Below are positions 37,010-39,292 of a stretch of DNA of 64,000 nucleotides, piece by piece. A program made the position numbers and the translations under genes. Origin of the DNA: Octopus sinensis (lineage: Eukaryota); the NCBI RefSeq assembly GCF_006345805.1, contig NC_043015.1, forward strand, positions 49,476,001-49,540,000, in the 5' to 3' direction. The stretch's first letter is position 1. Each line of letters starts with the position of its first letter. The notes under the pieces were generated by a model, which was given only the letters and a program-made list of their open reading frames with translations, was not told the origin of the DNA and did not search any database.

Positions 37010-39292
37010 TCATCTCAGTCTTTTACCAGCCATGCTACTCATTTTATCAATTATTTCTGGCTTTTGGTAAAACTTGGCATAGTTTTCCAACCACTTCCGC
37101 CTGTAACTCCACATTTCCCGAGCCATCTGTTCTTCCGTGTTTGTTGCTTTCTTCCATGCATTTTCCAGCACATTCTGTTCGCTTTTGCTATTGTTCTCCT
37201 CTTGAATGCTGGATATCATTTTTCGGTCAATTTCCTCGTATTTATCCTTGTGCTTATCAGCTTTCATCTTTGAAAGAACCACTTCAGACTTCAAACACAA
37301 CAGACTGATGTCATCTGAAATGCTTTGCCATTTCAAACTGTTTTGTTTTTTCGTATTCCATAATTTCGTTGGTAAAATTGTAGGGACATTCGCAGCCCAA
37401 GCCCGATAGATTTTAGCTTTCTCAGTACATTTTAAGTAAGTATAATAGGCATGTTCTCTTTTACTTAAATTGGAATTCCATTTCTTCCTGAATTCTTCTT
37501 GGCTGGTCTTCAGTTCCTTCATTTTACTAATATAGTCATTTAGCTGGCCTTTCTTTTCGTTTGAATATTCTCCGGTTCTAAACATCCTTTGATTCGATTG
37601 TAAAGTTTCATATGTGTTGTTATTACTGTTTTCTTTCCCAGTGAAAAGACAAACAGATATATTTCCACTCTGTAGCGGAACGTATTTCGGTGTTGTGTTA
37701 TGACAAAGCGGAACTGTAGAGTCCATATCATACGATTCCGAGTTCTGAGATTTATTAAAAGGTTCCGTTGATAATTCAACGCTGCTTTGTTCCGTGTGAT
37801 CGGTATCATTCTCGTCATCGATTGTAGAAATGGTGTCGGTATTAGAACTTGTCTCATTAACATCATTAAAATGCTTTTCTCTCTTATTAACACCAACGAT
37901 ATCAATTTCATTACAGTTGCTCATTACAGTACCTCGTTCATTTTTGTCCTTGCTACATTCTAAATCTTCTTCTTTCTTTGCAGACATGTTTTCGTTTTTA
38001 TCTGTAAACAAGCTCTGATCTTTGCAGCATTCTTCGGCTGAATGTTCATCTGTATCCATTAAATCTTGCTTTGCTTGTGGACTGGTTTTATATTCAGCGA
38101 CTTTACTGCTGTTACTCGAGTTAATTTCTTCACCATTCGCGACAATATTCTCATTCTCATCCTCATCCTCATCTTCGTCCGTGTTTTTCCCTTTATTAAT
38201 TAAGGCCAACATTTCGGCCCTTAATCGACTGCTAATATCTCCACCTTGTACAGTTCCTATACCATTAATCTCATCTTTACTATTAATCTCATCTTCTTCA
38301 TCCTTATCTTTGGTTTCACTTTCTTCCACATTGGGCATTGTATTAGCTTCCACATCTTCTGCTTTCTCCGGTGAGACAGATATTTCATCTTTTAACTTTG
38401 ATTGATCATCGCTAGATACTTCTTCAATCACACTATCATCAGCATTATTTGTAGTATCGATATTGCTGACAGATTCCTCTTTTTCTTCATCATTCACTGG
38501 TGAAAGGCATAACACACTTGTATCTCCGTTGTCCACAGGTTCCTCACTATTTTCCAGGTCATCTTTATCTACTTCAGTTTCTTCTATGTAGCGTTTAGTT
38601 TCACCCAACATCTCATTTACACATTCATAATTAGTGCTCTCTTCATTATCATCATAATTTCCTTTATCAATAGCTGAAAAATTACGATTAATATGTTTCA
38701 AATTCGTTTGGTTCGTTCCTGGTACAGCATTCAGTATTTCTTCGTTACTACAAGTAACATCTTTAACTTCGTCTATTTTTCCCTCATCTTCAGTTTCTGA
38801 CTTAACAGCACACGTTGTCACTTGAGAAACATCTTTCGCAGCATTTTTAATTTCTTCTTGTTCAACGGGAGGAGGTGGAAAACAAATGCTAATTTTGGTG
38901 GTGCTTTTGCTAGCTTCGTTCATCTGCACAGCCCCTTCGCTTCCTATTGTACTTGACGGAACCATCAAAGTATCTTCGCTGTTGTTATTTTCAAAAGGAA
39001 AATGATTAAAGATAGATTTCAACTGAATCAGTTGCTGAGATCTTGGGATAAATTCCGGGGCATCAGCAGACATTTTAGACTTTGTAACACTTTTATATTG
39101 GCCGTGAACCGGTGTGTCCATCACATCTTCAACCATAGCATTGCTATGGTCCCCTGTCGAGAAAGTAACTTCTTCTTTTATTGCGACGTTAAGCTTTTGA
39201 TTGAGAATTTTCATCAATTTTTTAATATCTTCAAAAGTTACAGATTTCTCATACGAGTTTTGGTTCCGTGCTTTATGTCTGTGATTATTCAT
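37010..39292 (-). CDS. Intronless 760-aa protein: PAM2-like motif (aa72-83), FPPPP motif (aa138-142), acidic low-complexity middle, Trp-rich helical C-terminal domain (aa ~585-745) possibly of retroelement ORF1 origin
   Basis: 2283-bp uninterrupted ORF, ATG to TGA, with an in-frame TAA 4 codons upstream of the ATG. Complex protein-like sequence in a ~2.9 kb block free of SINEs and microsatellites. Product not identified by homology. Confidence 0.8.
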   Translation of the reverse strand: MNNHRHKARNQNSYEKSVTFEDIKKLMKILNQKLNVAIKEEVTFSTGDHSNAMVEDVMDTPVHGQYKSVTKSKMSADAPEFIPRSQQLIQLKSIFNHFPFENNNSEDTLMVPSSTIGSEGAVQMNEASKSTTKISICFPPPPVEQEEIKNAAKDVSQVTTCAVKSETEDEGKIDEVKDVTCSNEEILNAVPGTNQTNLKHINRNFSAIDKGNYDDNEESTNYECVNEMLGETKRYIEETEVDKDDLENSEEPVDNGDTSVLCLSPVNDEEKEESVSNIDTTNNADDSVIEEVSSDDQSKLKDEISVSPEKAEDVEANTMPNVEESETKDKDEEDEINSKDEINGIGTVQGGDISSRLRAEMLALINKGKNTDEDEDEDENENIVANGEEINSSNSSKVAEYKTSPQAKQDLMDTDEHSAEECCKDQSLFTDKNENMSAKKEEDLECSKDKNERGTVMSNCNEIDIVGVNKREKHFNDVNETSSNTDTISTIDDENDTDHTEQSSVELSTEPFNKSQNSESYDMDSTVPLCHNTTPKYVPLQSGNISVCLFTGKENSNNNTYETLQSNQRMFRTGEYSNEKKGQLNDYISKMKELKTSQEEFRKKWNSNLSKREHAYYTYLKCTEKAKIYRAWAANVPTILPTKLWNTKKQNSLKWQSISDDISLLCLKSEVVLSKMKADKHKDKYEEIDRKMISSIQEENNSKSEQNVLENAWKKATNTEEQMAREMWSYRRKWLENYAKFYQKPEIIDKMSSMAGKRLR

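Follow-up and report, generated by a model that had tools for sequence, protein, structure and literature searches.

A single-exon gene of 760 codons, located on the minus strand at 37010..39292 of a 64-kb stretch of the Octopus sinensis genome (contig NC_043015.1, positions 49,476,001 to 49,540,000; this whole stretch is referred to as the window), is a derivative of a protein family encoded by the first open reading frame (ORF1) of Penelope-like elements (PLEs), and not a copy of such an element. It is very probably a cephalopod host gene that was recruited from the ORF1 of a two-ORF PLE related to Neptune and Nematis, and the part derived from the transposable element (TE), at the C-terminus of the protein, is under strong purifying selection. 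The protein also contains, close to its N-terminus, a PAM2-like peptide that is predicted to dock onto the MLLE domain of poly(A)-binding protein (PABP); this motif is the clearest functional lead, and it does not appear in an earlier interpretation of the same DNA made from the letters alone (the sequence-only reading). Taken as a whole, a PLE ORF1 origin combined with a role as a PABP-tethered adaptor of messenger ribonucleoproteins (mRNPs) is the best explanation and a reasonably probable one.

The ORF list contains one ATG-initiated ORF of 760 aa in a single exon, with its stop codon at 37010-37012, exactly as the sequence-only reading had described it, and nothing else in the window exceeds 270 aa, which also bears out its remark that this was the sole long ORF (a Pfam search of the other ORFs, of 159-270 aa, gave zero matches). 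The local GC content is around 0.34, at which stops are expected to make up about 7% of the codons, so that 760 open codons would occur by chance with a probability of around 1e-25 (composition arithmetic) and the run cannot be attributed to chance. Tandem Repeats Finder detected no microsatellite between 36860 and 39793, with dense arrays on both sides, and the sole repeat within the coding sequence (CDS) is an 18-bp unit present in two copies, in agreement with the previous description of the gene as free of microsatellites amid repeats. Similarity to reverse transcriptase (RT) or endonuclease (EN) was absent not only after the stop codon, as had been noted before, but from the whole window, where tblastn with three PLE ORF2s gave microsatellite noise only.

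A word-indexed search that covered 5.8 billion proteins returned exactly three relatives, from Octopus vulgaris (99% identity, 760 aa), Octopus bimaculoides (93%, 750 aa) and Argonauta hians (58%, 782 aa), whose gene models are annotations only; in O. vulgaris and A. hians, the two relatives with contig data, the protein is found on one contig only. A deeper ortholog was located on an ENA contig (L003), in which one ORF codes for the N-terminus, including the motif KMSADAAEFVP, and the next one for the C-terminal domain (46% identity). Its conceptual product, of around 651 aa, has the same three-part architecture (N-terminus, acidic middle and C-terminal domain), is 51% identical to aa 1-88 of the window protein and has an acidic middle (D+E 78 and K+R 37 of 339 aa). 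The term orphan, which the sequence-only reading had applied to the gene, was therefore inexact, given these orthologs in three other octopods and one deeper relative.

Conservation along the protein is bimodal, with two almost invariant regions, aa 1-103 (38984..39292, minus strand) and aa 585-760 (37013..37540, minus strand, comprising the PLE-ORF1 core and a short tail), separated by an acidic middle that is variable and contains indels, with the exception of a few islands. Synonymous sites are saturated in the comparison with the Argonauta gene (contig L001; pS 0.65-0.9), and all the dN/dS values obtained from it are consequently upper bounds: 0.12 for the whole gene, 0.024 for the N-terminus (dN 0.044), 0.053 for the C-terminus (dN 0.080, pS 0.65) and around 0.27 for the acidic middle. 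Residues 585-760 are 100% identical in O. bimaculoides. A ratio near 1, which the sequence-only reading had named as an argument against a co-opted gene, is not what was found for the gene or its two ends (0.12 or lower). DNA similarity to Argonauta is confined to a segment that begins 15 nt before the ATG and ends 12 nt after the stop codon, the flanks sharing only short dispersed repeats, while the comparison with O. vulgaris shows flanks that are collinear over 10 kb, with around 94% identity. The ORF list, the orthologs and this CDS-confined conservation all identify the 760-aa ORF, at the level of sequence, as a complete and real single-exon cephalopod gene that is strongly conserved. It is not a TE copy, because there is no RT or EN in the 64 kb, each species has it on a single contig and its flanks are collinear with those in O. 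vulgaris; the possibility of a young TE with many near-identical dispersed copies, also considered in the sequence-only reading, does not apply to a gene that is single-copy and orthologous across octopods.

The probable origin of the gene is indicated by its C-terminal domain. In word-indexed searches this domain alone retrieved no relatives, and the family alignment added one protein, so the family is visible only through an exhaustive HMMER search, in which a profile of aa 562-760 was compared with 1.84 billion cluster representatives (E<=1e-3). This search gave 113 matches, two of them host-type (the gene's own cluster, P0002, and P0004, from L003) and the other 111 TE-type, with E values from 1e-14 to 1e-3, the best TE match (1e-14) coming from O. 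sinensis itself. The TE-type proteins, mostly of 300-450 aa and nearly all from metagenome or SRA contigs, form 111 clusters at 50% identity, and clusters of relatives at 90% identity hold up to 16 members over several contigs, which is consistent with multi-copy elements. They share an architecture composed of a short N-terminal region with an amphipathic helix, a core of around 150 aa and a basic tail of around 130 aa rich in N, R and Q (median length 130 aa, median isoelectric point 10.6), which lacks zinc knuckles. In pairwise tblastn, the TE ORF1s match the window at 37019-37507 (E 7e-18 to 3e-12). The PLE-ORF1 core domain covers aa 598-744 (37061-37501, minus strand). The core alignment is collinear and all the family-invariant residues are kept (W605, L609, R612, Y629, W632, P641, D689, W713, E721 and W728), the TE ORF1s being only 20-30% identical to the window core and to one another.

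AlphaFold2, run on the family alignment, predicts that the C-terminal domain is composed of three long helices, with a predicted local distance difference test (pLDDT) of 90.6 and a predicted template modelling score (pTM) of 0.82, in accordance with the helical domain with spaced tryptophans that the sequence-only reading had placed at 37058-37540. The core bundle is mildly basic (isoelectric point 9.6). Foldseek searches against PDB and BFVD gave generic three-helix coiled-coils only (best E around 0.9, TM around 0.5), sequence and profile searches of PDB gave nothing significant (best E>=0.29, chance matches), and Pfam had no match for the domain or for any of 35 family members. The domain has therefore no relative in Pfam, PDB or BFVD, and a match to a known host family, which the earlier interpretation had recognized as the finding that would undo it, was not obtained.

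The genomic context of the relatives, together with the domain content of their neighbours, identifies them as the ORF1 of two-ORF PLEs that are Neptune/Nematis-like, and not of long interspersed elements (LINEs) with an apurinic/apyrimidinic-type endonuclease (APE) and RT. Eight loci (L004-L011), from at least six subfamilies, were inspected, and in all of them an ORF2 that is homologous across loci lies directly downstream of ORF1 in the same orientation, usually after a gap of 14-260 nt. ORF2 contains RVT_1 above the Pfam cut-off in L005 and L007 (33.7 and 30.3 bits) and GIY-YIG above the cut-off in L005 and L009 (23.7 and 28.2 bits), and no APE domain was seen in the ORF2 of these relatives. 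It also carries a DKG motif, a CX2-5CxxC linker and two cysteines between GIY and YIG; canonical PLEs with a C-terminal EN have been described as having the DKG motif, the CX2-5CxxC linker and CCHH cysteines in GIY-YIG (Craig et al. 2021, PMC8557442), and the linker points to Neptune/Nematis rather than to Penelope/Poseidon (PMC8557442). In four loci (L006, L007, L010 and L011), ORF1 is immediately preceded by the 3' end of a further ORF2 in the same orientation, indicating the head-to-tail tandem arrangement that is typical of PLEs. One locus, L009, which comes from an NCBI assembly, holds a whole element in compact form, with ORF1 at 298-1959 and the RT/GIY-YIG ORF2 at 1974-4250, and in O. 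sinensis itself a PLE ORF1 (P0005) is annotated and has a frameshifted RT remnant downstream. The sequence-only reading had compared the domain with multi-copy ORF1 proteins of elements without long terminal repeats (non-LTR) and had raised the question of whether an APE-RT ORF2 would follow the matches; the ORF1 position and the RT-encoding ORF2 were found at 8/8 loci, while the assignment to APE/RT LINEs failed, the EN being GIY-YIG. PLEs are filed by Repbase under 'non-LTR retrotransposons' in the broad sense (PMC5753468).

Canonical EN+ PLEs have been described as single-ORF elements (PMC8557442), the one Neptune ORF1 mentioned in the literature consulted had no database match (PMC12602865) and none of the 35 members analyzed matches Pfam, and for these reasons the three-helix PLE ORF1 family seems to be undescribed so far. 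The EN-minus PLEs of bdelloid rotifers (Athena/Terminons) are similar in carrying extra ORFs, some of them with coiled-coil motifs (PMC5408684; PMC8557442), but they are telomere-associated and endonuclease-less, and no sequence relationship to the present domain is claimed. Two further features of the PLE loci were recorded. A degraded O. sinensis copy contains around 2 kb of tandem repeats between ORF1 and RT (L004, 9227-10718), with units encoding ...RPPLLLQENLRTENGIWRRN..., and precomputed Pfam matches place DUF8422 and HTH_animal at the N-terminus of ORF2.

The window gene and the PLE ORF1 proteins (P0005-P0115) thus share a homologous core of around 150 aa in which every invariant residue is kept. 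The window gene differs from them in being single copy and in lacking both ORF2 and the basic tail of around 130 aa, as its protein ends around 15 aa after the core, and it has in addition the PAM2-like peptide and an acidic insertion of around 480 aa, neither of which has a TE counterpart. In an unrooted neighbour-joining tree of 105 core domains, 197/200 bootstraps recovered the host set (two Octopus species, Argonauta and L003) as monophyletic; its stem is long, and no TE sister group has support. Core distances are at most 0.75 within the host crown, with a median of 1.82 among TE proteins and 2.07 between host and TE proteins. Since the TE family is far more diverse and is present in many samples that have no relation to one another, among them plankton metagenomes of Tara Oceans, a single old recruitment from a TE is favoured over the capture of a host gene. 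The previous proposal, that a retroelement ORF1 was domesticated and gained an acidic arm, is thereby upheld, given the homology, the single copy, the purifying selection and the lack of a following RT/EN.

The PAM2-like motif, SKMSADAPEFIP, occupies aa 72-83 (39044..39079, minus strand), within the conserved N-terminal region, which is nearly invariant from Octopus to Argonauta. Pfam scores it as PAM2 with 13.8 bits (E 0.05), under the 20-bit cut-off. In the PAM2 consensus, LNxxAxEFxP, Phe10 is the main determinant of binding, position 3 enters a hydrophobic pocket and Ala7 is sterically required (PMC7356810); the octopus peptide, MSADAPEFIP, matches the consensus at A7, E9, F10 and P12, carries Met at position 3, the hydrophobic one, and contains Ser where the consensus has Asn4. 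The motif is identical in octopods, and the L003 version differs only at positions 8 and 11, which are x in the consensus. The A.EF.P core appeared in 0.23% of protein shuffles (chance 0.0023), and the motif occurs in none of the 112 other proteins that the profile search retrieved. It falls in a non-helical stretch of low pLDDT, and in this it resembles the PAM2 partners of PABP (Paip1/2, eRF3, Ataxin-2, Tob, PAN3 and LARP4/4B), in which a 12-residue peptide of the LNxxAxEFxP type is located in a disordered region; unlike them, the octopus peptide has Ser at Asn4 and a Pfam score below threshold, and the rest of the protein is related to none of them.

Upstream of the motif, the full-length AlphaFold2 model contains an amphipathic helix at aa 20-45 (FEDIKKLMKILNQKLNVAIKEEVTFS; 39158..39235, minus strand; pLDDT around 78), which by eye resembles the first helix of many TE ORF1s and may correspond to their N-terminal coiled-coil helix, although an hhalign comparison with TE ORF1 N-termini was not significant (P 0.047, probability 1%) and MAFFT leaves the helices unaligned. 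Downstream of it, the acidic middle (aa 104-584; 37541..38983, minus strand) contains 115 D+E and 44 K+R, for a net charge of -71, and is predicted to be mostly disordered, nearly all of aa 95-556 having a pLDDT <50 except for short helices, the most confident of which is 353-367; these values match the acidic disordered arm of around 500 aa that had been described ahead of the domain. This is the most variable part of the protein, with indels between species that include a 23-residue D/E insertion in Argonauta. An exception is a short island at aa 347-368 (TVQGGDISSRLRAEMLALINKG; 38189..38254, minus strand), which is kept from Octopus to Argonauta (dN 0.086), contains the predicted helix 353-367 (pLDDT around 60) and is not clearly retained in L003.

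These features suggest a mechanism in which the PAM2 peptide would dock the protein on the MLLE domain of cytoplasmic PABP, and so on polyadenylated mRNPs, while the basic bundle derived from ORF1 could offer another surface for binding, either of RNA or of a partner protein. Paip2 is a small, very acidic PAM2 protein, and the acidic arm of the octopus protein might modulate PABP or mRNP behaviour in a Paip2-like manner, or else keep the protein soluble; the net effect would be a post-transcriptional control of the bound mRNAs. A PABP-tethered mRNP adaptor or regulator is put forward here as a tentative reading, in which PABP binding, the binding of RNA or a partner and the biological role are all inferred.

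Several observations weigh against this reading of the gene and of its origin. The PAM2 score below the Pfam gathering cut-off and the Ser in place of Asn4 make PABP binding no more than a prediction. Binding of RNA or a partner by the bundle would be analogous to that of LINE ORF1p, and it rests on this analogy because the fold has no informative structural neighbour. In L003, a 1-nt frameshift lies in an A-run (AACAAAAAATTC, around 9885-9893), beyond which the homology is picked up by the following frame; the shift could have arisen in the assembly or could reflect a genuine, recent inactivation. Synteny with the Argonauta flanks is undetectable at the DNA level, where their divergence is too great for a judgement. 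The tree has no root, and the direction from TE to host is drawn from the diversity and architecture arguments. Finally, no hammerhead ribozyme was found by Rfam in the TE loci at the gathering threshold or at E<=1, on short and partial contigs that may omit the terminal repeats, and the sole Rfam matches in these loci were microsatellite-type miRNA noise.

With the same origin, the gene could instead encode a retroelement restriction factor, whose core would co-assemble with active PLE ORF1s and poison their ribonucleoproteins (RNPs) as a dominant-negative 'Gag decoy', a type of restriction for which Fv1 is an example. The loss of the basic tail and the gain of an arm with a net charge of -71 are what a poison subunit might look like, and PAM2 would take the protein to polyadenylated TE transcripts. 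Octopus genomes do carry PLEs with such an ORF1 (P0005 in O. sinensis, with its RT remnant downstream) and contain two further stand-alone genes derived from it; moreover, mammalian L1TD1 associates with the ORF1p of its ancestor, L1, and a role in genome defence has been proposed for it (PMC11925450, PMC4161310). However, an interface engaged in an arms race is expected to evolve fast, and the core is extremely conserved (dN 0.08 to Argonauta and identity in O. bimaculoides), which fits a fixed cellular partner better. Hetero-oligomerization is doubtful with TE ORF1s that are only 20-30% identical to the core, and the core was predicted as a self-contained bundle, in a prediction made for the monomer only. 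The mRNP adaptor is preferred because the sequence of the bundle has hardly changed, in contrast to the free divergence of the TE proteins, and we regard restriction as unlikely.

The opposite direction of transfer, in which an old cephalopod host domain, with the window gene as the ancestral form, was captured by a PLE lineage as an accessory ORF1, is compatible with the unrooted tree and with at least three stand-alone genes containing the domain in Octopus. PLEs can transduce host DNA (PMC6431247), and if canonical EN+ PLEs are single-ORF elements (PMC8557442) their ORF1 has to have been acquired from somewhere. This direction is nevertheless improbable, as the 111 TE-type clusters are separated by a median distance of 1.82 compared with at most 0.75 in the host crown, come from many unrelated samples, plankton included, and share an architecture of their own (N-terminal helix, core and basic tail), while host-type sequences are only 2/113 clusters.

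The literal version of the sequence-only reading, namely the ORF1 of an APE/RT LINE or a retrogene copied from an intron-containing parent, can appeal to the absence of introns, to the ORF1-like position of the relatives and to a run of 11 A around 20 nt after an AATAAA, some 600 nt downstream of the stop codon. It is largely refuted and has become very improbable: the ORF2 of the relatives contains RT and GIY-YIG with PLE-specific motifs and no APE was seen in it, there is no match to Transposase_22 or to any other Pfam family, the domain is a helical bundle, unlike L1 ORF1p with its coiled-coil/RRM/CTD, searches of 5.8 and 1.84 billion proteins yielded no parent gene, and the A-run, which lies in AT-rich sequence, is not conserved in Argonauta. 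A solo or decaying copy of a TE ORF1, or a gene-prediction artefact, as a TE-derived domain of unannotated function in AT-rich and repeat-rich surroundings might suggest, is refuted by the 760 open codons in DNA of 34% GC, by orthologous ORFs that are intact in the genomes of four octopods, with dS at saturation and a dN/dS of 0.12 or lower, by the single copy per genome and by conservation that ends at the CDS borders.

The domestication of structural genes of retroelements is a recognized route to new host genes, and the closest parallel to the octopus gene is L1TD1 of mammals, which derives from LINE-1 ORF1p and is likewise a host gene made almost wholly from the first ORF of a retrotransposon, without ORF2. 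To our knowledge, L1TD1 does not carry a PAM2 motif. The two genes differ in their source (LINE-1 or PLE) and in their fold, which is Transposase_22/RRM/CTD in L1TD1 and an unrelated three-helix bundle in the octopus protein; neither Transposase_22 nor RRM plus CTD was matched by Pfam in the window protein or in the 35 family members, nor by sequence or fold in PDB. They also differ in selective regime, since the domains of the octopus gene are under strong purifying selection, while L1TD1 is reported to have been subject to positive selection and to repeated loss in mammals (PMC4161310). The event is therefore of a known kind, and what is new is the element class, the unrelated fold, the selective regime, the PAM2 motif and the uncharacterised PLE protein family.

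In a search of a literature collection, no account was met of a host gene that derives from a PLE. We propose, with the same reserve as for the adaptor function, that this is the first known gene of that kind, a PABP-docked and cephalopod-wide regulator built on an undescribed 'Gag-like' fold, that it is one of at least three stand-alone genes of this derivation in Octopus, and that PLE ORF1s have been a recurrent source of mRNP proteins in cephalopods. If this is true, the domestication of PLE ORF1 would be comparable to that of L1TD1 or of the Gag-derived genes of vertebrates, and the short list of domesticated structural genes would be extended to a second TE class and a second animal lineage. 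It would also expose a widespread ORF1 family in Neptune/Nematis-like PLEs, providing a handle on how PLE RNPs are built, and, through the PAM2 motif, a domain of TE origin would be connected, in a way that lends itself to direct testing, with the machinery of the poly(A) tail in cephalopods, which are known for unusual post-transcriptional regulation.

The two further stand-alone genes, both apparently single-exon and with a divergent PLE-ORF1 domain, are located in O. vulgaris (OX597826.1; L012, 10001-11131 and 1991-3508), 7 kb apart and on a chromosome other than that of the window gene. One of them (P0095/CAI9732184.1) matches O. bimaculoides A0A0L8HZQ7 over a single ORF with 99.5% identity, and for this reason its 31-kb multi-exon model looks like an annotation artefact; its neighbour, of 505 aa, is 45% identical to it and has retained the N-terminal helix and the basic tail as well as an acidic linker. 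The pair has no PLE ORF2 within 51 kb and no PAM2 motif, and it adjoins a Kidins220-like gene. The two genes group together in 300/300 bootstraps and join the clade of the window gene in only 172/300.

Some other elements were observed around the gene in the window. The AATAAA and the A11 run that follows it around 20 nt later lie 3' of the gene, at 36402-36437 of the minus strand, and may be its polyadenylation site. A scan of the window for promoters and terminators of bacterial type was uninformative, as the organism is a eukaryote. The 10 kb on either side of the gene contain seven copies of a dispersed repeat of 41 bp (40675-45714 and 35301-35341), in both orientations and none of them inside the gene; the repeat is around 90-94% identical to positions 7469-7509 of the Argonauta contig L001 and is probably part of a SINE-like (short interspersed) element common to octopods. 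Around 1.2 kb past the stop codon, at 35699-35807 of the plus strand, there is a full-length match to 5S rRNA (Rfam RF00001; 46.9 bits compared with a gathering score of 38, E 1.3e-6), which could be a 5S gene, a pseudogene or a SINE derived from 5S rRNA.

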